Source: Trichosphaerium sp. ATCC 40318
Lineage: Eukaryota; Protista; Tubulinea
Assembly: GCA_038496445.1 (NCBI GenBank)
Contig: JALMLS010000216.1
Coordinates: 372,001-436,000 of the forward strand
DNA: 64,000 bases
Direction of reading: 5' to 3'
In this document: positions 9,787-58,018 of the stretch, piece by piece
Numbering within the stretch: the stretch's first letter is position 1
Layout: every line of letters begins with the position of its first letter
Program-made: the position numbers and the translations under genes
Notes under the pieces: generated by a model
The model's input: the letters and a program-made list of their open reading frames with translations, nothing else
Databases searched by the model: none
Told to the model about the DNA's origin: nothing

Positions 9787-10811
9787 TTATACGCTAAAGC
9801 TAGCTGAGACGCCAAGGTGATCAGAAACTGGAACTCCATCTGGAGTGGTGTATTCAACTACTCGCGTGCTCATGGTACAGTGGATGTCTTTGTAAAGGAT
9901 GTGATCGAGACTTTTTTTGATACGCGGGAATGTAATGGGATGATCTATGGTTGGATCCTCATCGACAATATTAACCAGAGGCGCGAGAGTCTTTTGAAGG
10001 AAACCGTAGGATTCTTTATCTCCAATAGCGTCAATATTCCAGTCACCACTCGCAACGATCTTGGCGTTCGGATCACTTTTGAGAATAGGCGCTATGAGTT
10101 CATCTTTGATTTGTTGTAGTTGCTTCTCCCGAACACCTTTTGAATGTGCATCAAGATGAGCAGTAATGATATGAAGTGATTCATCTCCTAAAGCATAAAA
10201 CGTCAACTAACCTACTACGTCTTTTTTCAAAAGAAATAAATGAGCAACCTGGTTGCTAGCTAGCAAACCAGGATATGTATCACGTACCTATCTTCAAGTG
10301 AGCATGTAAGGCTCCTTTAGAACACAATATCTCCGTGTAACTCCACTTTTTGAAAACTATGCTGTTACTAGCCACCCAAGGAAATTTTGATAAAATCATT
10401 AATCCTGAATCCTGTACGCATGGTAGATAACGCTCTGGGCGTTTAGATTTCACGTGGTGACCTGTAATACCGTTACTATTTTCGTTACACTGTTTTATGT
10501 TACTTGCCTTCCCATACGTCTAGTATGCGTTTTTTACGTACTCCAGTGTCAGAAACTGGCGTGTGAAGTGAAAAAACTTCTTGTAGGCAAACAATATCGT
10601 ATTCGTTTATATGCTCTAATAGACCCTCCAAACGGTTGTATTGATGCGGGTAAGAGTGATGAACAAATGAATGTATGTTCATGTTCTGGGATAAGAACGA
10701 AACAGGCGTTTCTACAACATGGATACATCAATACGCGCGAATTAAAACAAAACAATTCGTTGCAAACCGGAATTCAGGCGCAGTACGTTTTCCAGGTGCT
10801 TCAGCTGCCAT
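9787..10811 (-). CDS. Endonuclease/exonuclease/phosphatase (EEP) fold enzyme, neutral sphingomyelinase-like
   Basis: Motifs DIVCLQEVF, DSGLMILSKFP, SKGALHA, TAHLDA, SGDWNI, LDHIL, SDHLGV. Confidence 0.85.
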
Positions 10812-11154: not shown

Positions 11155-14100
11155 ATGAAGCTTGCTGCGTCTTTCAATGCATCACTCAAGAGCAGAGAAA
11201 CCTCGTATGGATGTTTAAGTTCGCTAGAGAAAAAACAATTCAAAGAGGTAGAGTTGCAGCGTAAATGTTACGCAAACGCGCTAACACATCCTTAAAAGCT
11301 GGAAAATGCCCTTTTAATAACAAAATTAAGTGATTGGTACACAGTATCCTCTAAAGACGCTCTTTCTGTCGCAGATTCACCAATACTGAGGTAACGCAGT
11401 AAATTATCCAATTTAACCTCCGTAATTAAACTGACACTTAAAAAAGGGAACACGCAGGCTCAATTTCGCGTCTGCTACATCGTATATACCCTTTAGAACG
11501 TTGGGAGCCTTGGAAGTTTCAAAGTATACCTAGAGGCTATTGGACCGAAGAAACACATCAGCATGACTTTATCAGATACGTACGCATCAGTTTACAAGCT
11601 TTGTAACGACGAGGAGTGTCAACTGATGTTTTTGTAGTTTGAGGGAAAATTCAAGATAAAAAAACTGGAAGATTGGTACACTATAACTTCGTCTGAGTTT
11701 GTACTTGCTGGTGCAATTGGTTTGTTGAAATTGTTTGGAGGAAAGCAAGGCATAGGTGTCGTACCTTCAATTTTGATGCATCTTTATCCAGACCATAACT
11801 GGATATTGTACAAGTTTGGTAAGTCACTTAACCCAAATCGGGTTTGTTTTCGTTTTTTTTAAAATTCGACTACAACCATGTTTGTGAGCAATGTTTTTGA
11901 TGTTGAGGATAGACAAAGTTGCTAGTGGATTTTGGTTAGATATTCATAATAGGCTAACAGTAATAAGAGACGTACGTTACAGTCAGTGATAGAGAAATAC
12001 AAATTTCACAACTATTTTTTTATAGTTAGAAGAACATTTGAAAATCAGTCAAATTGGCGACTGGTATAATGTTTCATACGATGATATATATGCTCTTGGG
12101 TCACGCGGACTAATGAAGTACGTTTTCATACTAATTATTGTATTCGGCTTTGATATTGACGAACATCTTTAAGTTTCTACGGATCTATTCCACGCATGCT
12201 TAATCGAATCTATCCTGACTTTAATTGGAAACCACGAAAGTTCTGTACGACCTCTTACATCTAAACAAGTCCCTCATCAACATTAATTAGTATCACCACG
12301 AAATAAAATACTACCAAGCCGTTGGGATAATGTAGAAAACGTTCGAACTACACTAGAAAAGGTTTGAAAACAACTTCATGCATTTTCTGTTTTCTGTAAA
12401 CCAACTCCACTTATAGCTCTATTCTCGTTTGAAACTACAAACCCCGAGTTGTTGGTATACCGTTAAGAAAACTGACATGCTTGATGAGTACGAGATTGGA
12501 CTTTGGAAGTAAGGCGTAAAACACTCTACTGGTATTACCGTTTACGCCTGTTTTAGTAATTCTAATGGTCTGTGCAATGCTCTTCAGTTGGCTTATCCTT
12601 CTGGAGAATGGCTTCCATGGCGCTTTGGTAGGTGTTTTTTTGTCAATTACAACTTACAAGATGTTTAGAGAGCGTAGAGCGATACTTTTGGGAAGCAAGA
12701 GAAAATAGAATACAGTTTTTGATGCACGTGCGTGAAACGCTTCGTTATAAACAAACAGAATGCTCATCGACTCCACTATTAGATAGAGAGAACAAACAAT
12801 CTAACACAAATAGACGATTGGTATGGTATCATCCGAGAAAATGTCAAGAAGGCCGGAGGTGCCGGCTTAATAACCAAGCACGATTTTTTTACTTCAAAAA
12901 AAACTTTAAAAAGAATGTTGTCGTAGAACTTCATCTTCATCTTAACAAGTTTTGGTACGGCGTGAACCTAGTTTAATAATTGTTTTCAGATACTATAAAG
13001 GCTCTTTGTTGCTATTCCTTCAAGATATGTATCCTGATAACAAATGGTCATTGTGGAGGTTCTGTATGTACACCTAGTAGACTTCTATTGATTTTTTACT
13101 ACTAGTAAAAGCTCCTGGTTATTGTTGGCAACAGGAAGACAGCGTTCAAGAATATATTAGATTTATTGAAGATAAATTTAAGATACACAAAATAACTGAC
13201 TGGTACAGAGTATCACGTACTCAGATTGAAGAGAATCATGGCAGCGGTTTCTTAAATTACTGGCCTCAAATATTAACAAATATGTACCCTGAAGTAAAAT
13301 GGGATATTGACTCATTAAGAGCCAAGAAGAAATGTGCAACACAGAGGTACAACAAAAAAAAAACCATAAAATTACATTTTTGTTTACCTCTCTTCTGACA
13401 TTTTCTAGGGAGCTTGGTATTGCTGTACATGAAGTGCTGCCACAATATGATATTTTAGAAGAGTATAAACCAGGTATAAAGCGAGATTCCTCTGGACATA
13501 CCATGACACTTGATATTTTCCTTCCTATTGTCAATATCGCGTTTGAGTATCAAGGTGAACATCATTACTTTGATTTCCATGCTAGATTTGCTCCTGCAAC
13601 TGCACAAGAACGCTTAGATGCAGAGAAAGTTCAAGAATGTACTAAGAATGGTACCAACACAAATCATTGTTTCGCATTTTCTTCTTATCAGTGAGTAGGA
13701 ATAACAATTATTCCAATACCATTTTGGTGGGGTCGTGACACTGCTAGTATAGCTGCAACAATAAAGTACTATAGGTGCGTTCTACATATAGTGGCGGCTA
13801 GCAGGACTATTGCTGCTGTAATATGTTGTACTTAAATATTTTTGTTAGACCTGACTTGGATATTGATGTACCTGAAGGAGTTGAACCGCTTGTGGAAATG
13901 CCAGAACATATAGCAAATACTCCAAGTATGAGAATCTTTGATATAATCAAATCACAAGGTCTTTTATTAATGAGTAACTGTTAGGAAGTTCTGTTGAGAA
14001 AATAACAAAAGTTCAAACATATAATGCTGGTAATGATTATTCGAACTGGTACCCACCTCTATTCTATTTATGATAAGAACCACGTTAATTGAAAACACTT

Positions 14101-15046
14101 TTCTATAGGTGGATGTCTGAAAAATATGACGGCATACGTGCTTACTGGGACGGAGAAAAAATGTATACTAGAAATAATAAAACGATAACTGTACCAAAAG
14201 AATTTGCCAAACAACTTCCAGAAGGATTCCCATTGGATGGAGAACTATGGTATAGAGCTTACCAAAGAATATTTTAAATATCTTACTATCATATTAGGTC
14301 AGGTTATGGCACTAGAGAGAAAACAATAACACATGTTGTCAAATCAAAATCAGACTGGCAAAGTACGAAAAAAAGAAGAATCCATCTTTGGTTACAATTG
14401 TTTTCTTTTCTTACAAAAAAGCCGTAGATGTTACCTACAAAGTTTTCGATACACCTATACCAAACACGCCGTTTGAAGAGCGTATTAATATACTAAAGAG
14501 TAATACAAAACTGAAAAATAGTCCCAGCATACACGTGGCACCTCAGACCAAGTGTGTCAACAATAGTCACTTACACATGACTTTGAAGGACATTCTTTCG
14601 AAGGGTGGCGAGGGTATTGTAATAAGGGAACCTGGATCATTATATAGAGCCGGTAGGGTATCTTCTGTATTGAAAGTCAAACCACATTATGAAATTGAAG
14701 GGAAGATGTTAAGACCACACAACACAGCAAACTTTTTGCTTTGTGAACTTGCAAATGGTGAAAACGTTTTTGTAAAGTGTAGCTCTCAAGATGCTAAAAA
14801 CCCACCAGCTCATGGTACAGTGTTGACACTAAGACATGAGGTACGTGTAATAATTATTTTAATGGTGTATTTAAGCACCATACATACCAGTACATGTACC
14901 AGTCAAACGAGTTAACATGGGTTTTTATAAAGGGTATTGAAAACAAAAAGCCAAAGTTTCCGTTTTACTATCAGCGTAGGATAGATATGACTTGGCAAGA
15001 TGTATTAGATGACTATAATCAAGGCGCAGATTCTGTTGTAAAGTAA
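11155..15046 (+). CDS. Trp-rich tandem-repeat protein fused to a PD-(D/E)XK/RAP-like nuclease and an ATP-dependent DNA ligase (about 19 exons)
   Basis: Six repeats centred on (D/C)WY; nuclease-like TLDIFLPIVNIAFEYQGEHHY...DAEKVQECTKNGITIIPIPFWW; ligase motifs I SEKYDGIRAYW, III LDGELW, IIIa YKVFD, IV EGIVIR, V LKVKP, then an OB-like tail. Confidence 0.8.
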
Positions 15047-19018: not shown

Positions 19019-20368
19019 ATGAATTTCTGTGGTGTTTCAGTTGATCAAGCACTTGAATATTGCAGTAAGCATCCAGGAGCGTTGGATTCAATAATGGCAA
19101 AAGAGAACTCCCAAACATTCATACAGCGCCTAACAAATATTTTAAACGTATCTAATGCGGAGCTTGTAAAACAATTTGATAATCTTGTCAAAGACACAAC
19201 CACAGCCATAAATGCGGATGAAGATCATCAAATACATCTCCCAGCCCTCAAATTAGAGTACACTAATAGAAGAGAGCCACGGAATATTCTTAATTTCCCA
19301 GTGGAGGTGATTTCAAATATTCTTGTACATACAGAAGCGAAGGCACGATTTGTCGTTGCTCAATCTTGTCATTTGATGGCTGATATTATTCACGATATTG
19401 TTGGATATGAGATAGTTTATCTAAACACTATTTCAGATATTTTAAAGATAAGACAGTACAGAGGTATCAAAAACAATAGTATGATTGTATTGAAGACAGA
19501 AAGTACTTTGTTTTCATTACTCGATGGATGCAGGCATATCAAAGCAAGCAAGGCAATATTTCAAACACATCTTGTACAAATAAAGGACGTGGATTTGAGA
19601 GCACTTGCTGGTGTTTATAGCATTGATGTCAAAAACAACAAACAGGTTACTGATGCTGGTATACAAGCGCTTGCAGGTGTTCATACTATCAACCTTGAAA
19701 GCACTTGTGTAACAAAAGAAGGTTTAGAAGCACTGGCTGGCGTTCATGACATTTCTCTTCGTCACATTAAGCTAACTGACTGGGATATTGCAGCTTTGAA
19801 AGGTGTTCATAGAATAGACCTATCATTCTCTAATGTGGATGATAAAGGTGTCAAAGCACTTAGTGGCGTCCATTCTATTTCACTAACGTGTTGTGGCCGT
19901 GTGACAGATAAAAGTATAAAGAAGTTGGCAGGTGTTTATTCCATTAATCTTGATTACACTGAAGTTACTGATGAAGGTATTAAAGCTCTTGCTGGTGTTC
20001 ATAATATTCACCTTACCCAAACTTCTGTGACAGATGAAGGGCTAAGCTTCTTAAGAGGTGCTCATACTATTAACTTGGGCAGGTGTGAAAATGTGACAGA
20101 TGCAGGTATTAAGAAGTTAAAAGGTGTACATTGCATTTTCCTCAACAACACTTCTATTACTGATGAAGGAATCAAAGCACTCAATGGTGTTCATTCTATC
20201 TATATTCACAATACTGCAGTGACAGATGAAGGGCTCAAATTCCTACAAGGTGTTCATACTATTGGTTGTTCTGGTTGTAAAAATATAACTGACAAAGGAC
20301 GTAAAGCACTGAAACCTTCTAACGTCATTGGTCGACATTTCAAACGAGGTAAATGGAGCTGTAACTAG
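19019..20368 (+). CDS. Intronless F-box + leucine-rich-repeat protein
   Basis: F-box-like NILNFPVEVISNIL...VAQSCHLM, then about 11 repeats of 22-23 aa (VTDEGIKALAGVHTINL). Confidence 0.85.
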   Translation: MNFCGVSVDQALEYCSKHPGALDSIMAKENSQTFIQRLTNILNVSNAELVKQFDNLVKDTTTAINADEDHQIHLPALKLEYTNRREPRNILNFPVEVISNILVHTEAKARFVVAQSCHLMADIIHDIVGYEIVYLNTISDILKIRQYRGIKNNSMIVLKTESTLFSLLDGCRHIKASKAIFQTHLVQIKDVDLRALAGVYSIDVKNNKQVTDAGIQALAGVHTINLESTCVTKEGLEALAGVHDISLRHIKLTDWDIAALKGVHRIDLSFSNVDDKGVKALSGVHSISLTCCGRVTDKSIKKLAGVYSINLDYTEVTDEGIKALAGVHNIHLTQTSVTDEGLSFLRGAHTINLGRCENVTDAGIKKLKGVHCIFLNNTSITDEGIKALNGVHSIYIHNTAVTDEGLKFLQGVHTIGCSGCKNITDKGRKALKPSNVIGRHFKRGKWSCN

Positions 20369-22142: not shown

Positions 22143-24496
22143 TTATATCCCGTTGGCGTATAGAACATCAGTACTTGGTTTCATCAAGCATTCTACTTAC
22201 AAGTAAATTCGCAGTTAAAGACAGCGAACAGAGAAATTTTTTTTCGAGAATTGTTTGTAGATTTTCGTACCTTTGTTAGGCTTAGTTTCTATGGATTGTA
22301 GTAGCGGTTGTTCGCCTTGAGGTACTTTCACATTTATACTAGGACATTGCTGTTTTATTGTAGCTGCTAAGGAACCTGCATCACCACTCCACCAGTACGG
22401 AATATGAGCAAGAGTTACACCTATTGAAACGTCAAAAAAGATCGCAATTACTGCAAAGCTTTTGTACCTGCATCTGCACAATGCTGACTCTTTTCATAGT
22501 CAAGAATGCATTGTTTATCGGCATTATGCCATTTAAACGTGTCTTCATAGTGTTGCTGACCTAGCAAATCTGAGTGAATCGCGACAGAACTTTTTTTTTT
22601 ATTACCTTGGTACTCCACGGCAAGATTGTGTTCAGGGACGTATACATCAACAGATAATGGAAATCCGTCCCCTGAGCCCCTAACAGTAATATCCATTTCC
22701 TCTATAACATTAGAACCAGGAAATATATCTTTCATCTTGTTAACAAGTGTCCTAAAAATAAGATCGTCAGGCCTCAAAAAATGACGTTTTTGAAATTGAG
22801 TTTGATTTGTAAATCGTGTAAGATTTTTTTGAATTGAGAGTTTGTATTTGAAAAAAATCACGTGATTTTTTTTCATGGGTAGTACTTTTGTTGGGTGCTT
22901 TTTGAGAAGGTATTAAACTGTTCCCACGCCCAAGGAAATTTAGGTTCTATCAATGAAAGCATTTGTGGCCAATATCTTTGTAATGTCCTACTAGCACCAC
23001 AAGAAAGCAACTGGCTCAAAGAAACCCGATACCTTAAAAACAAGTTAAAAATAGTTAAAAAAACAATCACAATAAACAAAGGGAGGCCTTTAACGCACCA
23101 AGACTCCGCACTTGTGATACCAAGCTGATTCTTAACCTTATTTAAAAACGTTTGCTTGTGCCCATCATCCTTCCAGTAGCTAATCTCAAAAGCCTTGGAT
23201 TTCTCAATATCAAAAAGATCAAACGATTGGTCATCCCACGCATAACTTCCGTATAGCTGTTTTAGCGTCTTCGTCAAGGTACCATATCTAATAATAAAAT
23301 AATGAGTAATGCAGTATGTTTAACTGCATAGATATCAGATATACCTCCTCACTAATGTATGAACCAAGTGTTTAGGCACCAAGCCAGCATGTTCATACCA
23401 ATCATCCATCGTTTTTATTTTTCTGACAAACTCAATATTCTCCAACAAGTTTCTTTGGTTCTCGACATCGTCCCAATAATTAACAGTTTTAACTCTATGA
23501 ATAGCAGCGCGACGATTAGCATAAGACAAGAAGGACCTAGGCTCCCACTGATAATCATTATATACATTCTGAAGGCACCAAGCAAGAGAATTTTCGTACC
23601 TATTATGATGTGAATCTTCCGAATAAAATTATGATAACAGTTGTTTGAAAGGTAAAAGGCTTATTTCTCCGTACATATTTAGCACTCCAGCATCTCTTAA
23701 TCCTTCTATCATACCTTCAGTAACATTATACCAACCTGAAAGCTCTTTTACACCAAGCTGGGATGCAATTGAGTTTAAAGCTTCTTTCCTCTTATCTTGA
23801 CAATCCCAGAACTGTTTAAGAGCAGGTCTGCCGTTGTAAAAATCTTGTGTGAGCGCGTGTATCACACAAAAAGATCCTTTTATTCGGTTTGTGTGTACCT
23901 GAAAGTTTTACCGTTATTTTTCCACTTATGCTCCGGAAATAGCGCCAATAAGCATTGAGCAACAGAACAGTTGTATCTTGATTCAAAATGAGTTGGGTTT
24001 TTGGTTGGAAGTCAAAAAACACAAAAATCAAAAAAAAAACCTTTCACTTGCGTCGTTCCAAGGAAAGTTCCTCCATGACGAATAATAAGCTTGTCGCTAA
24101 CGCCACGCCATTCATCTAAGATTTTTACATTTAGAATCCGCGCAATGTCGTTTAACGCGTTTCGTTGGTTCTCTTTATTATCCCAATACCCTATTGGAGC
24201 ACAACTTTGGCTTTAAGAGGTGTTGACACAAAGTTCATTCTTGTGTACCTGAACTTATACAATCTCCACTCGTACCGCGGGTACATTGTGCGTGCGTATT
24301 TAATTACGCCAGCGTAGCTTGTTTTAATGCTTAGCAAAACAAAAAAGTGTAAACATCGCGCGTACACGTTTTTTATCGCCCCTTTACTATGCTGGTGAAC
24401 TTGGCTGCTTTTTACAGCATACCAATCGTCACAAGTGCGCACTTTCAGTTTTACTGCCAACTGCTCATAAAACGAGACATTTAACCTCGCCCTCAT
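22143..24496 (-). CDS. Paralog of 11155-15046: five Trp-rich repeats + PD-(D/E)XK/RAP-like nuclease, no ligase
   Basis: Repeats at DDWYAV, DEWRGV, SGWYNV, DDWYEH, ESWYRV; nuclease SVDVYVPEHNLAVEYQGQQHY...DYEKSQHCADAGVTLAHIPYWWSGDAGSLAATIK. Confidence 0.8.
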
Positions 24497-25257
24497 TCTA
24501 CAATTTCTTCGTTTGTTGTTTTGTGAATAATTGCAAAAAACTAGAACTTCACAACGTTTCCGAGGTAAAACAAAAGCACAACTACGCTACAATGTAACTG
24601 TACAGCATGATCCTTAAATTACGACTGGTCAAAATGTGTCTTTTTACGCCTAGCGCTGGCTCGAACTCACACGCTCGTGAGACACACAACTACACGAACT
24701 ACGTCATCAAACGCTTGGCAATTTAAAAATATGGTAAAACCACGTCTACGTCTCCTGACGCGTGTGTTGACTATACTGTACACTTTATAGTAGCTTCTGG
24801 ATACCACAGCTTCCTGTCGTTGCAAAGCAATCAAACAGCGCCCAAACGTATTCAAACGATAAACAAACAACTTAGCGGCTAGTTCGCGACGTTACTTCAG
24901 AATAGCCGAATTTATCTTATCACGAATGACTTGAAAAATGTTGAAATAACTCACAACCCACATTAGCTACCTATTCACACAGCAAGGTACGTCAGCTGCA
25001 TTTCAATTATTTCCTTATTATCTCCGTCTGGACATAAGCTGTCTTTGTGGGAGAGTGACGTTTCGAAACGATTCAATTTTTTTTTTTTCATTATTTTTTT
25101 ATATTGGTGTACGTTAGTTTTGATTAGCTACAGCCACACAACAAGCTTACTACCGGCTCATACAAGCTTAATAAACATGTAAAAAACTCTACTAACCTAC
25201 AGTTTAGCCAATATCACCACGTGAACCAATTTCCCGTTAATCCGCAAGCTACACCAA

Positions 25258-32535: not shown

Positions 32536-32928
32536 AAGAAAAATGATGTGAAGCACTTGATACACAAGCCTATTTGTAAAAAATAAACTAACCCCATTTA
32601 ACTGTAGACGTTTATTAACACTCAATAGTTATGCTAACAAACTAGAAATATATTCGTACATGACTCTACTATCACCGTGGCTCATAGTATACGCGCGGAT
32701 ACGACTCACCTTTGCTGTTGTACCAGGCCCAATGTCGTTTTTTAAAAAAAACCAATCATGCCTCTACTAGACTACTTTCTATTGTCTGATGTACTTTGGT
32801 AAAAGAACAAGCGCTGCAACGGACTTGCACCCAAATAATTATCTAATGTAGTCTTTTACACATTTCGAACTTAGCGAACTTAACTAATGTATTATTCAAC
32901 TCAATTTCCCTTACACGTGACAAGCAGT

Positions 32929-33996
32929 ATGAATTTCTCAGGCGTTTCTGTTGAGCAAGCGCTCAAATACTTTGAAAACAGTTATCCAGACGAATTCGTT
33001 AAAATAATGGCAAAACAAGAACAAACATTCATAACGCAGCTAGCAAGTATATTATCCGCCTCAAATATGTATCTTGTCAAACAACTCGACAAGCTCTTCA
33101 AACACTCGAATACAATCGTTAACGATGCAAAAGAAGATCACGTGACTCGTTCGCCAGACCTAAATTCTCAGGACTTAGATCACAAGTCGCCAAAGAGGGC
33201 ACACGAGATAACCTTCCAAGAAACAAATATTCTCGATTTTCCAGTGGAAGTTATTTCGATTATTATCAGCCATACAGAGGCAAACGATAGATTCTGTGTT
33301 GCTCAATCATGTCTTTATATGGCTGATATTATCCATGATATTACTGGATATGAAAAGGTTTTTCTTAAAAAAGCCTCAGATATTTTAAAGATAATACAGT
33401 ACAGAGGTATCCAAAACAATAGTATGATTGTATTGAAGACAAAAAATACTTTGTTTTCATTACTTGATGGATGCCGCCATATTAAAGCCTACGAATCTGA
33501 TATTTGTAACAGCGATCTGAAAGCACTTGCGGGTGTTTGTAGCATTGATCTTTGCAACACAAAAGTTACAGATGAAGGTATTATGAGTTTATCAGGTGTT
33601 TATTCCATTAATCTCGCTTACACTGAAGTTACTGATGAAGGTATAAAAGCACTTGCTGGAGTTCATACTATTCAGCTAAGAAGAACAAAAGTAACTGACG
33701 AAGGTATAAAAGCGCTTGCAGGTGTTCATACAATTGACCTTGAAGGAACTGCAGTCACTGATGAAGGTATAAAAGCACTTGCTGGAGTCCATGCGATTTA
33801 CCTTAGCAACACATCAGTGACTGATGAAGGTATAAAAGCACTTGATGGTGTAAATACTATTTCTCTGACTCAGACAGCAGTCACTAAACAATGCATTAAA
33901 GCACTTAAACATAAAGTTCAAACCATTGATTGCTATACACTTAAATATGCAGGAAACCAGTTAATAACTTTACAAGGATTTGAAGCACTTAAGTAA
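32929..33996 (+). CDS. Intronless F-box + LRR protein, paralog of 19019-20368
   Basis: Start MNFSGVSVEQAL matches the paralog's MNFCGVSVDQAL; F-box NILDFPVEVISII; VTDEGIKALAGVH repeats. Confidence 0.85.
   Translation: MNFSGVSVEQALKYFENSYPDEFVKIMAKQEQTFITQLASILSASNMYLVKQLDKLFKHSNTIVNDAKEDHVTRSPDLNSQDLDHKSPKRAHEITFQETNILDFPVEVISIIISHTEANDRFCVAQSCLYMADIIHDITGYEKVFLKKASDILKIIQYRGIQNNSMIVLKTKNTLFSLLDGCRHIKAYESDICNSDLKALAGVCSIDLCNTKVTDEGIMSLSGVYSINLAYTEVTDEGIKALAGVHTIQLRRTKVTDEGIKALAGVHTIDLEGTAVTDEGIKALAGVHAIYLSNTSVTDEGIKALDGVNTISLTQTAVTKQCIKALKHKVQTIDCYTLKYAGNQLITLQGFEALK
33545..33900 (+). repeat. 66-bp tandem coding repeats (22-aa LRR units)
   Basis: ACTGATGAAGGTATAAAAGCACTTG recurs at about 66-bp spacing. 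Confidence 0.75.
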
Positions 33997-52225: not shown

Positions 52226-53077
52226 ATGCTTGCACATTCTAATAATATTGATTACAGGGTAATCCGTTTGATTACAAGATACAATACCTTAAAATAACAA
52301 ATTTATTAGAGAGCGGCTGTAAAAGCGGAAGAGTGCTATATATTAGACCTTCCAGTTGAGATTCAGCTTGATATTATTGATTTGGACTCATCAGTGTATT
52401 TCAAATGGCCAATCTTGTCAAAACAGGCGGCAATAAACACAAGGTATGATTGTGAGATGAATAAGCATGGAAAATGGCTTTGTAGAAGAAAGAACACTGT
52501 CATAACGCAAACGTGCTGGGAACATGGTATACAAGATGGAGAGTACAAGGGATGGTGGTCTTTTGACCTATTGAAGCACCGGAATGGCACATTGCAAAGG
52601 CATTGTAATTATATCAATGGCAAACGAGAAGGAGAATACAAGGAGTGGTTCAAGAATGGGCAATTGTGGAGCCATAGTAATTACATCAATGACAAACGAC
52701 AAGGAGAATACAAGAAGTGGACCCGTGCTGGCCAATTGCGTATACAGTGTAGTTACATCAATGACAAACGAGAAGGAGAATACAAGGAGTGGTATCGGAA
52801 TGGCACATTGGAAAGGCATTGTAATTATATCAATGGCAAACGAGAAGGAGAATACAAGGAGTGGTTCAAGAATGGGCAATTGTGGAGCCATTGTAATTAC
52901 ATCAATGACAAACAACAAGGAGAATACAAGAAGTGGACCCGTGCTGGCCAATTGCGTATACAGTGTAGTTACATCAATGACAAACGACAAGGAGAATACA
53001 AGGAGTGGTATCAGAATGGCACATTGAGAAGGCATTGTAATTATATCAATGGCAACGAGAAGGAGAATGCCAATTGA
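52226..53077 (+). CDS. F-box-like + MORN-variant (YwqK-like) repeat protein with a frameshifted 3' end
   Basis: MLAHSNNIDYR, an intron, then RAAV...ILDLPVEIQLDII; 24-aa repeats NGxLxxHCNYINGKREGEYKEW. Confidence 0.7.
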
Positions 53078-55139: not shown

Positions 55140-56921
55140 CGGAAAATCTAGGTTCTACTGACCCACTATGACACTACAAGAGTACTTACTCTGAACTTAA
55201 AGACCCAGCCATGTTTCAGTAAGTTCGATAGTAGTTTAAGATGTCACGTGCTTTTTTTTCTTTAGAACACTTGTAAAATCGTGGCTGTATCCTTGATAGT
55301 TGATACATACAAAGAGCACCTAAGATTAAAGCCAAGCTCAACCCTCGGCATCGCTGCTCTCATGTTCATATTTGTGTAACCTATCTTCGCATGCTTAGTA
55401 TACGTTAACATAAACCCGTAGTGAGCAGCTGGTGTTTAGGTTCTACTTGTGATTAAGAAACAAGAGTGGAGCTCGTAGCTTGCGCATATGGAGCACTGAG
55501 CCAATAAGTACTGGAATGAGATTGCTGCATAAGTAATTGCCTTGTGACGTGCTATGTATTCAGGATTGGCGTTCGATGTTCAACTTGTTTCGGGAACTCT
55601 TAATGTATCACCTACATCCACTATACCTTTCAACTAGAATTCAAATACACGTTCAATACTTACTACTGCATGCTATTGCACTATCAATTCTATTCTGATT
55701 GATTGGTGAAGAGCTGTAAGAGCATTGTAAACAGAACCTCTTTCTTTGCTATCTTGTAAATACTGCAAGTATTATGTTCTCTTTAATAAACATCTATTAT
55801 CCAAAACCTGGTTACACGTATAGATAAACGGTATGAATGTTTATTTATAGTACTACGATCGTGAGGGTTGTATACCTTGAAGTGCAATAATGTAGTTTAC
55901 ACCAAGGGAAGGTTGATGGTTTGAAAACTGTTGTCCTTGTCCTGCGGATGCTGTGGTTCCAGTGACATCAACGGTAGCTTCAATAGTTGTTGTCGCACTT
56001 AAAGTACCTTGAAAAGACAAGTTATGACAAGATACCAAAGGATAGGGAGAAAAAACTATCATACGAACCTTTGTCAACTGTCAATCCTGATGTATCTACT
56101 CCAAGAGACAGGTTCACATTACCTGATGTACTGCCTATCACCCTATCCTCCTCCACTTTGATAGGACAACGCGCATTCAAAGATTGACAAGTGTCTACAA
56201 CTCGCACAAGATTAAATAGAGTGCCAGTAGAGCAAGGTGGTCCTTCTCCTGGAAGTCCTCTTGAAAGTGTTACGTCAGCTGTAACGTCCAAATTCAAGTC
56301 TACATTTGGATCACCAGTGATTGAAGCGCTTCCTGATATTGTGGGTTGACCTTCAATTGTTGTTGTAGCAGTGGTGAAGTCAACTGTTTGATCCATGGAT
56401 GATACTGAGTGTGAATGAGAAGGCATATTTACCTCAGCTAGAGTTGTACTAGCAGCTCCAAACTTTTCTCCCAATCGGATGCTTGGTAAATCTTGTATTC
56501 TCTTAGAAATCACATGTAGCGTCAAGTTGTACCTGGTGCTTTTTCAGCTGCGTGTACGGGTACTCTTCCACGAAGATCTGGGAGCCTAATGTGTGTAAAT
56601 ATCCTTTTATTTGCGCAAGTCTATCAAGTATAGTAACATTTTAAGAAGGCGGTACAAAAGGCAAGTAGTGTCAAAACAATGCCTTGCACAGGCTTCACCA
56701 TAACGTTGTTACTTTGCCAAAATTCGAGGCTTCAAGTGCTCAAAACGCTGCGACAATTGTGGGGTGATCAAATGCTGATTTTGGTAAGTTAACTCACGCA
56801 AAAGTGGTTCTACCATCGCCTCCATATGTAGGTCCAATCAGGCTGAACAAAGCCTCGTAATTTTGAGTTGCTACAATGGGAAAGTAGTAGCAACGTCTCA
56901 ACTTTAAATAACTTACCCAAT

Positions 56922-58018
56922 GAGGGATAACCCGCAAAAATTTTTGGCTGGCTATCTCTATGTGGATAAGTCGCACATTTTTTTGTTCACTTATCTCTAT
57001 CATAAAATGCTTTCTTACTACTCAGCTCGTGACCACGTGCACAAAAAACTTTCCCAAACAACGTTTTGGGCAATGCAGGCATATGTTGAAAAGCATGAGC
57101 CTATTTTGTGGGCTCTTGAGAGATCACATGGTTTTTTAGCCAAAATGTTGGTCTTTACACTTTACCTTGATCTGGTTGGTATTGGCATGTCTCACTTACA
57201 CCAAAAAACAAAAAATTGGATCAAAATAGGCAACAATTCTGTACAACACAACGTGTACAAAATTAGAGAAGTTCTTTATGCCTGGGCAAATACAGTGCTT
57301 GTGGTGGGTACAGCCAGCAACTGGACAGCAGCAGCAAGGAACGTTAAGAAACCAGAACTACTTAAAGCTGTTAATTTATGGATGGATTCTTCAGACTTTA
57401 GGCTAACAGGCAAACACACCACATCTAGAAAGAGTGACCTATGGTCATACAAACTGAATGCTCCTGGAAGACGATACATGGCCATAATGGATGGAAAAGG
57501 CCATTTTCGAAAGATCTATGGTGGGTACTCTCCAAAGGTGTATGACAGCACATTCCTTGAGGTAATGCGAGAGCCCTTTACTAGGACCTTTGAAGGTGCA
57601 ACAATCATTGCTGACAACCACTTCAGAAAGGCACAGCAATACTTTAAAACTTTAACAATACATGCTAATTTAAAAGAACCACGGAATAGCACCAAGACAA
57701 AAACTGGGAGAAGTATCAAAGTACTCACTAAGGAACAGTGCAAGTACAATGCAGCTATCAAAACTCTCCGTGCACGAGTGGAGTGCCCATTTGGCCAGAT
57801 AAAGAATAAATTCAAAAAATTATCAAAAGCGTGGTTTGGGCCAGCCATCCAAATGGACTACCTTGTCTTTCTTGCAGCAGCTGTACACAACCTCACACGT
57901 TAAATAAAAGTTGGTTTTAGTCCAAAAGAGTTTTTTGTTGAGTCATGTGACAGGTACAAATAAAGTGGTAAAAAAAGCATAGAGATAGCCAGCCGAAAAA
58001 TTATGCGGGTTATCCCTC
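56922..58018 (+). mobile_element. 1097-bp DDE DNA transposon (IS5 / PIF-Harbinger-related) with 41-bp TIRs and an AAT target-site duplication
   Basis: TIRs GAGGGATAACCCGC...GGCTGGCTATCTCTATG (38/41 match); AAT at 56919-56921 and 58019-58021. Confidence 0.92.
57007..57903 (+). CDS. DDE_Tnp_4-like transposase, intronless and intact
   Basis: LWMDSSDF (D), WSYK, IIADNHF (D), YN...RARVECPFGQIKNKF (E). Confidence 0.88.
   Translation: MLSYYSARDHVHKKLSQTTFWAMQAYVEKHEPILWALERSHGFLAKMLVFTLYLDLVGIGMSHLHQKTKNWIKIGNNSVQHNVYKIREVLYAWANTVLVVGTASNWTAAARNVKKPELLKAVNLWMDSSDFRLTGKHTTSRKSDLWSYKLNAPGRRYMAIMDGKGHFRKIYGGYSPKVYDSTFLEVMREPFTRTFEGATIIADNHFRKAQQYFKTLTIHANLKEPRNSTKTKTGRSIKVLTKEQCKYNAAIKTLRARVECPFGQIKNKFKKLSKAWFGPAIQMDYLVFLAAAVHNLTR

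Follow-up and report, generated by a model that had tools for sequence, protein, structure and literature searches.

Can a single polypeptide recognize, cut and rejoin a nucleic acid? The question is raised by a gene at positions 11155-15046 (forward strand) of a 64,000-nucleotide (nt) stretch of DNA from Trichosphaerium sp. ATCC 40318 (contig JALMLS010000216.1, positions 372,001-436,000), hereafter called the window. A preliminary description of this locus had proposed that six repeats of about 75 amino acids (aa), a nuclease and a DNA ligase stand on one spliced protein, and that the repeats might form a recognition array of the TALE/PPR type. According to our analysis, repeats, nuclease and ligase belong to one intron-rich nuclear gene and one polypeptide. 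Sequence comparison documents the gene structure, the three-part architecture, its conservation among Amoebozoa and the presence of all residues expected for both catalytic centres. We tentatively interpret the protein as an enzyme that may make DNA nicks or clean DNA ends and also seal nicks, possibly in the mitochondrion.

Gene structure and splicing

The window is eukaryotic DNA of about 37% G+C in which short introns are abundant. The hand-built gene model is as follows.

11155-15046 (+): whole gene, 22 exons and 21 GT-AG introns of 38-94 nt
11155-11247, 11299-11390, 11447-11579, 11638-11818, 11913-11971, 12026-12117, 12174-12244, 12291-12361 (+): exons 1-8
12417-12508, 12557-12627, 12669-12727, 12783-12916, 12990-13063, 13106-13346, 13409-13650, 13699-13774 (+): exons 9-16
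13849-13973, 14012-14048, 14109-14249, 14298-14362, 14422-14840, 14933-15046 (+): exons 17-22
11155-11247 (+): exon 1, encoding a 31-aa leader

The spliced coding sequence (2682 nt) runs without internal stops from the ATG at 11155 to the stop codon at 15044-15046 and encodes 893 aa. All nuclease and ligase strings named in the preliminary description lie within this frame, which contains LDIF...FEYQGEHHY...LDAEK...IPIPFWW for the nuclease and SEKYDGIR, LDGELW, YKVFD, EGIVIR, LKVK and YYQRRID for the ligase, and the six repeat cores are located where they had been placed (SDWYTV 11331, EDWYTI 11671, GDWYNV 12056, SCWYTV 12447, DDWYGI 12813, TDWYRV 13196). Intron 12 can be read in two ways, both in frame: as a GT-AG intron at 12917-12989, giving the 893-aa product, or as a GC-AG intron at 12878-12989, giving 880 aa. 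With the GC-AG version a 13-aa insertion disappears from repeat 5, and the intron falls precisely where the phase-2 intron recurs in other units; repeat 5 then scores 62.2 bits against the repeat hidden Markov model (HMM) as compared with 55.4 bits for the GT-AG version.

Introns occupy corresponding positions, in the same phase, in one repeat after another. In the hand-built model a phase-2 intron follows the GLL-type motif in repeats 1, 3, 4 and 5, a phase-1 intron follows W(K/R)F in repeats 2, 3, 4 and 5, and a phase-0 intron lies at the unit boundary after each of repeats 1-4. This pattern in the region of introns 2-13 (11248-13105) suggests that tandem duplication of a unit already containing introns built up the array, and it lends independent support to the gene model.

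Exon 21, which encodes part of the ligase, was used as query against 1.84 billion representative proteins. A transcriptome open reading frame (ORF) of 125 aa from MMETSP, P0001, is identical to residues 769-893 of the model and crosses the last intron. The junctions of exons 15/16/17/18/19, which span nuclease, linker and ligase, recreate motifs that are conserved in homologues. Residues 1-600 are colinear with a protein of Cavostelium apophysatum (P0018; E 3e-64), and residues 256-880 with P0003 (32.5% identity over 640 aa, E 5e-113). On account of the identity to P0001, of the fusions that occur in the same order on single transcripts elsewhere, and of the homologue-validated junctions and colinearity, the three modules are assigned to a single gene, and the proposal of one spliced protein with six repeats, nuclease and ligase stands.

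The fusion in other Amoebozoa

The same three modules, in the same order and on single transcripts, were found by the exon 21 search in Cavostelium apophysatum (P0015, P0018, P0039, P0105), Pyxidicula operculata (P0016), Amoeba proteus (P0031, P0214) and Nematostelium gracile (P0123, P0217), all of them represented by Trinity transcripts. Cavostelium alone has four fusion paralogues. This order is likewise present in P0003 (MMETSP), which is probably from the same genome as the gene studied here, in several metagenomic or ENA proteins, and in P0141, whose sequence looks dictyostelid. By these comparisons the architecture is that of a conserved amoebozoan family. The preliminary description had known of no characterized protein with this architecture; this holds insofar as we found no published description, but the architecture itself is not unique to this gene.

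Physarum polycephalum possesses a transcript (P0117) with the same three modules in the order nuclease-ligase-repeats, which implies that the modules were shuffled at least once.

A profile search with a family alignment (A3) recovered 56 relatives, the majority of which are repeat-plus-nuclease proteins without ligase. Word-based protein searches with P0018 at full length and with residues 150-385 of P0016 returned almost nothing beyond the query. One ligase-less member lies in the window itself.

22200-24586 (-): ligase-less, divergent paralogue in which DWY repeats accompany the same nuclease domain (LSVDVYVP...EYQG...IPYWW)

This paralogue shows about 25-43% identity and ends about 35 aa past the linker motif described below. 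No ligase remnant was found downstream of it, and no second ligase within the window.

Clear presequence-like leaders are present in relatives P0002, P0003, P0008, P0033, P0073, P0137 and P0014. Among these, P0002 (MMETSP/JGI, 368 aa) is a ligase-only protein of the same ligase clade, and its 70-residue leader without acidic residues has the clearest mitochondrial-presequence look of the set.

The ligase domain

The C-terminal part of the protein comprises the two core domains of a Lig E-type ligase.

14012-14681 (+): Lig E-type nucleotidyltransferase domain (Pfam DNA_ligase_A_M on exon 21; PDB Lig E matches)
14122-14124 (+): codon of the motif I lysine (SEKYDGIR)
14682-15046 (+): OB-fold domain, probably of the OB_2 type, with motif VI FPFYYQRRID (whole chains of 8u6x and 4d05 align; P0001 covers it exactly)

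All motifs are intact in the spliced product (I SEKYDGIR, III LDGELW, IIIa YKVFD, IV EGIVIR, V LKVK, VI YYQRRID). Exon 21 alone matches PF01068 (DNA_ligase_A_M) with 33.4 bits at a cut-off of 26.2, and among solved structures it matches 8u6x (7e-12), 6gdr (2e-8) and 4d05 (1e-7), with the Chlorella virus ligase a distant match (1e-3). The ligase part of a paralogue matched Lig E structures at 1e-34 to 5e-28. PF14743 (OB_2) gave no match on the split exons of the window; homologues score 14-22 bits at the corresponding place, where the cut-off is 28. With 8u6x, 4d05 and 6gdr as its best solved relatives, the ligase is of the minimal Lig E type, as had been proposed. The protein as a whole goes beyond the two-domain plan of Lig E, about 635 aa of repeats and nuclease preceding the ligase.

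Motif I is conserved across most fused relatives. In some fused paralogues of Cavostelium (P0105, P0018) it is degenerate, either as SENVKGVR, without the lysine, or as SEKLEGVR, with Glu for Asp, so some members of the family could not be active ligases.

A quick maximum-likelihood tree was computed for 106 ligase domains. It has a split, with 95% support in the Shimodaira-Hasegawa-like approximate likelihood ratio test (SH-aLRT), on one side of which lie 19 of the 20 repeat-plus-nuclease ligases and all 8 nuclease-only ligases. A single origin of the fusion could explain this topology. The ligase of Physarum is placed elsewhere, on a long branch.

The nuclease domain

Between repeats and ligase lies a second putative catalytic domain.

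13345-13858 (+): Vsr/EDxHD/RAP-fold nuclease domain, residues ~488-597 (homologue model and family conservation)
13512-13514, 13545-13547, 13563-13565, 13617-13619, 13626-13628 (+): putative active-site codons D, E, H, D and K
~13719-13730 (+): PFWW motif
13859-14011 (+): nuclease-ligase linker, including intron 17; it opens with the conserved RPDL...VP.G..PL, shared with the ligase-less paralogue

None of the five residues D, E, H, D and K varies among the 14 family members of alignment A3, and each is kept in 90% or more of the 22 in alignment A1; a P and a W of the nuclease are also invariant or almost so. Since all five are present in the window, the nuclease is apparently intact and likely an active enzyme.

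The fold was modelled with AlphaFold2 on a homologue, P0003 (residues 136-398, two repeats plus nuclease), from a 22-row alignment that included two exons of the window. The model has a mean predicted local distance difference test (pLDDT) score of 89.9 and a predicted template modelling (pTM) score of 0.80. Its C-terminal 120 residues served as query in the fold search, with these matches:

I-Bth0305I catalytic domain (3r3p): Z 9.5, root-mean-square deviation 3.1, 97 of 97 residues
Toxoplasma mitoribosomal protein (9i05_Xr): Z 9.4, Foldseek probability 0.99
Vsr (1cw0): Z 8.2
Human FASTKD4 RAP module (9gek): Z 8.1
Tetrahymena mitoribosomal protein: Z 8.0

The homologue model thus agrees with the earlier reading of the middle domain as a member of the Vsr/RAP branch of the PD-(D/E)XK nucleases. 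Because the Z values are tied, the domain can be placed in the Vsr/EDxHD/RAP branch and no finer. The D-to-H spacing of 17 equals that between D196 and H213 in I-Bth0305I. Taylor et al. regard these two as counterparts of Asp51, which binds metal, and His69, the general base, in Vsr (PMC3239194).

A search of the PDB sequences with a repeat-plus-nuclease profile returned nothing significant. Two ligase-less relatives pass Pfam cut-offs, namely P0170 for DUF559 (24.9 bits, cut-off 20.6) and P0162 for DUF2726 (29.6 bits, cut-off 24.7).

The mitoribosomal proteins of Toxoplasma and Tetrahymena and the RAP module of FASTKD4 are among the best fold matches (Z 8.0-9.4). Together with weak Pfam RNA_ligase matches on the nucleotidyltransferase domain and the presequence-like leaders within the family, they would fit an organellar RNA-processing factor, comparable to the FASTK and OPR/HPR-RAP proteins, in which a RAP-like domain cuts precursor RNA and the nucleotidyltransferase is an RNA ligase or acts on RNA-containing nicks. 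We consider this rather unlikely. Pfam RAP (PF08373), FAST_1 and FAST_2 gave no match on window exons and homologues even at permissive thresholds (E up to 1-10), and the nuclease sequence leans towards DUF559/DUF2726. The ligase, moreover, stands firmly within the Lig E group of DNA ligases and has a probable OB_2-type domain, and its RNA_ligase matches are much weaker than those to DNA ligases.

The DWY repeats

The N-terminal half of the protein is made up of six units, each named here by its core.

11299-11579 (+): repeat 1, residues 32-106, core SDWYTV (HMM 1e-25)
11638-11971 (+): repeat 2, residues 107-186, core EDWYTI (HMM 3e-21)
12026-12361 (+): repeat 3, residues 187-264, core GDWYNV (HMM 7e-23)
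12417-12727 (+): repeat 4, residues 265-338, core SCWYTV (HMM 2e-22)
12783-13164 (+): repeat 5, residues 339-427, core DDWYGI, with a 13-aa insertion unless intron 12 is GC-AG (HMM 2e-20)
13165-13344 (+): repeat 6, residues 428-487, core TDWYRV (HMM 1e-16; family alignment)

An HMM of the six units detects 1-6 units in unrelated homologues at E 1e-8 to 1e-19. A second HMM, built from 39 units including the six of this gene, scores these six at 1e-16 to 1e-25; judged by such values, the similarity of the repeats is far above chance. Repeat 6 stops after the YP..W motif and passes directly into the nuclease domain, as it does in all relatives. The count of repeats and architectures gave copy numbers of 1-6, with at least one unit always immediately N-terminal of the nuclease. 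The consensus of 309 units from 71 proteins reads ak.Lgik..eDWY.vs..di...GG.gLL..Y.gSl..aL...YPe..W.pWkF...P.gfW....Nqr.fl. and the array of the window protein is basic, with an isoelectric point of 9.03.

A model of three units (P0039:77-302) predicts five helices per unit with good local confidence (pLDDT 80.9), at a pTM of 0.43. The low pTM value means that no fixed arrangement of the units relative to each other is predicted. In the P0003 model described above, the last two units pack confidently on the nuclease. The folds of helical module and nuclease are thus documented on models of homologues. With the three-repeat model, Foldseek returned no match under E 0.8, and a fold search against all PDB representatives found no relative, the best Z being 4.4. 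Matches at this level (TetR-type helix-turn-helix domains, SauUSI, the C-terminal domain of Slx4) do not rise above the noise expected of small helical domains, and no TALE, PPR, PUF or mTERF fold was among them. A reading of the five-helix unit as SAM-like or (HhH)2-like was dropped as unsupported. Pfam gave no match on the repeat and nuclease exons of the window. A permissive scan (E up to 10) of eight repeat arrays turned up a scatter of weak matches (SAM_TNK 5e-4, DUF2063 and others) and no convincing one.

The nearest named family, by the protein-language-model features and shape comparison of the ESM Atlas, is DUF4046 (PF13255). DUF4046-like clusters in the Atlas belong to Tubulinea and Discosea, another cluster nearby has members from giant viruses, and 8 of the 56 relatives from the profile search bear a precomputed PF13255 tag. 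In contrast, hmmscan with PF13255.11 stayed below the gathering cut-off of 22.8 bits on every array tested: no match was obtained on a window unit and seven homologue arrays at E up to 10, and the best score in relatives was 11.5 bits (E 0.45). Membership of the repeats in DUF4046 was thus not reproduced by hmmscan, and the Atlas and precomputed tags serve as leads only. No paper with the term DUF4046 was found in the literature searched.

Could the repeats be programmable? In such an enzyme each repeat would read a few bases and the array would target one organellar or nuclear sequence in a paralogue-specific manner, as in TALE, PPR, OPR or HPR proteins. In favour of this, relatives have between 1 and 6 repeats, and four paralogues occur in Cavostelium. 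I-Bth0305I, the nearest nuclease among solved structures, is a homing enzyme with a specific target site and modular N-terminal DNA-binding motifs, and shape neighbours in the ESM Atlas include phage nucleases with NUMOD/zinc-ribbon arrays, at low template modelling scores of 0.3-0.5. The properties of the unit nevertheless make this reading unlikely. It is a five-helix module of 75 aa and no stacking hairpin of 34-35 aa; a pTM of 0.43 for three units predicts no fixed solenoid; and the structure prediction and fold search yielded no TALE, PPR, PUF or mTERF fold. Entropy over the 309 aligned units shows variability that is even across exposed positions, without a hypervariable pair or hot spot like the repeat-variable diresidue (RVD) of TALEs, and several family members have a single repeat. 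The earlier suggestions of a TALE/PPR-like array and of a conserved scaffold with code-like variable residues are therefore not borne out. That the DWY arrays are sequence readers, each paralogue aiming a nick-and-seal enzyme at its own mitochondrial or nuclear DNA site, is a distinctly improbable extension, although, if true, it would amount to a hitherto undescribed kind of natural "cut and rejoin" system guided by protein.

Proposed function and cellular compartment

We posit that the ligase would seal DNA nicks via the usual Lys-AMP intermediate (Lys codon 14122-14124), and that the basic repeat array and the nuclease domain may provide the DNA grip and site selection that the minimal Lig E core lacks. 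The nuclease, with an Asp-bound metal and His as general base as in Vsr, could make or clean the nick, which would then be closed by the ligase, either directly or after a repair patch. One polypeptide would in this way both incise and seal DNA during a step of short-patch repair or recombination. The most likely compartment, as far as N-termini can indicate, is the mitochondrion, because many family members, including one that consists of a ligase only, have presequence-like leaders.

Several points weigh against this interpretation. Transcript support within this gene covers the 3' end only (P0001). The fold models are of the homologues P0003 and P0039 and not of the window protein, and the equivalence of the active site to those of Vsr and I-Bth0305I is one of spacing and conservation pattern, not of superposition. 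The nuclease exon has no Pfam match, and the fused homologues match DUF559/DUF2726 below threshold. The repeats, which have no solved relative (best Z 4.4), could bind protein rather than nucleic acid. The leader of this protein is short and bears a weak resemblance to a mitochondrial presequence: its first 14 residues include 3 basic and 0 acidic ones, and the first acidic residue stands at position 15. Finally, Dictyostelium has a ligase III orthologue (PMC2806865), so amoebae need not rely on this enzyme in their mitochondria.

The leader also bears on whether the protein might instead act in the nucleus, as a DNA-damage ligase like the Lig E that bdelloid rotifers and Mortierella gained by horizontal transfer. 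Its N-terminal modules would then bring the protein to chromatin that has suffered damage, while the nuclease fold would mainly bind DNA ends or lesions. Eukaryotic Lig E proteins with added PBZ targeting domains serve radiation tolerance, and their nearest relatives include Amoebozoa (PMC10665377). The only weakly presequence-like leader is in line with such a role, and other proteins in the wider match list bear different N-terminal domains (e.g., P0098). We judge a nuclear role improbable, given that the strict conservation of the nuclease active-site residues speaks for catalysis over mere binding, that many clade members have clear presequence-like leaders, and that no nuclear localization signal or PBZ-type domain was detected.

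If the proposed function as a nick-making and nick-sealing enzyme is true, it would show how a minimal ligase of bacterial type is fitted out, in a lineage of eukaryotes, for work on that lineage's own DNA, possibly that of the mitochondrion. A large unnamed repeat family of amoebae would also gain a first function, and a compact nick-and-seal enzyme of possible practical use would become available. Orthologues apparently exist in organisms that are tractable in the laboratory, such as Physarum and the source of the dictyostelid-looking protein.

Genomic context

A number of further genes and ORFs were noted in the window.

9787-10700 (-): head-to-head gene about 450 nt upstream, endonuclease/exonuclease/phosphatase family (Exo_endo_phos2 26.3 bits, just missing the cut-off of 27)
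19019-20368 (+) and 32887-33996 (+): two similar ORFs without introns (449 and 369 aa), both containing LRR_6 leucine-rich repeats of GVHxIxL units and resembling each other in the N-terminal region, which look like a local gene family
52382-53077 (+): 231-aa ORF of MORN_2 repeats (YINGKREGEYKEW units); the repeat causes long overlapping ORFs in other frames
56920-57903 (+): 327-aa ORF with a DDE transposase domain (DDE_Tnp_1/DDE_Tnp_4, Harbinger-like)

With a transposase ORF elsewhere in the window, a homing endonuclease as the best solved match and a family that is multi-copy, one may ask whether the gene is a domesticated or selfish homing-endonuclease-like element, or a defence gene traded with giant viruses, whose ligase limits damage from its own cuts. 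In the ESM Atlas, one neighbouring cluster has members from Nucleocytoviricota, and many phage DUF723/DUF4379/NUMOD nucleases are also close. We regard such an origin as very unlikely. The 21 spliceosomal introns, at positions recurring from repeat to repeat, point to an old resident gene, and expressed transcripts are conserved over distant amoebozoan lineages. No terminal repeats and no intron or intein context were seen around the gene, and two of its neighbours are ordinary cellular genes.

Comparison with known systems

Eukaryotic Lig E, including that of Amoebozoa, is already known; in the literature searched, no description of its fusion with a nuclease and uncatalogued repeats was found. 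DNA ligases and Vsr-type nucleases are each well understood, and it is the joining of apparently active incision and sealing domains behind helical modules that is undescribed there.

Bacterial Lig E (e.g., from Alteromonas mediterranea, 6gdr, 4d05, 8u6x) and eukaryotic Lig E share with our protein the core of nucleotidyltransferase and OB domain, the latter probably of the OB_2 type, with all motifs. Lig E has been characterized as a minimal enzyme that seals nicks and lacks a DNA-binding domain (PMC7470946). Eukaryotic members were described from bdelloid rotifers and Mortierella, Amoebozoa being included; only the two core domains were drawn for them, apart from the PBZ fingers of those that have them (Nicolas et al., 2023; PMC10665377). 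While the bacterial enzymes carry only a periplasmic signal and those of rotifers C-terminal PBZ fingers, the present protein has a 635-aa N-terminal extension of repeats and nuclease; an extension of this type is mentioned in neither study (PMC7470946; PMC10665377).

I-Bth0305I/EDxHD and Escherichia coli Vsr have the same variant PD-(D/E)XK fold, as seen on the homologue model, with a matching Asp...His...Asp set and an extra Glu, and in I-Bth0305I modular DNA-binding motifs likewise lie N-terminal of the catalytic domain. The present nuclease differs from both in that there is no detectable sequence match, its N-terminal modules are unrelated to NUMOD, it is not intron- or intein-encoded, a ligase is joined to it, and there is no evident counterpart of the zinc site of Vsr.

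RAP proteins (FASTKD4 with FAST1-FAST2-RAP, 9gek; 9i05_Xr, 9g6k_L9, 6z1p_AS) show the same succession of a helical region and a Vsr-like fold, and an organellar location is plausible for both. They are RNA factors without ligase, whereas our protein has no Pfam RAP or FAST match and is built of 75-aa modules instead of the 37-40-aa hairpins of HPR/OPR proteins. TALE, PPR and PUF proteins consist of two- or three-helix repeats of 33-36 aa in a continuous superhelix, in contrast to the five-helix units of about 75 aa found here.

The ligases k-alpha and k-beta of kinetoplastids work in the mitochondrion, and neither is known to include a nuclease or DWY repeats. Both are small proteins with PF01068 and PF14743 that are related to Lig E (PMC10665377), and they offer the nearest functional analogy for a mitochondrial role of the amoebozoan enzyme.

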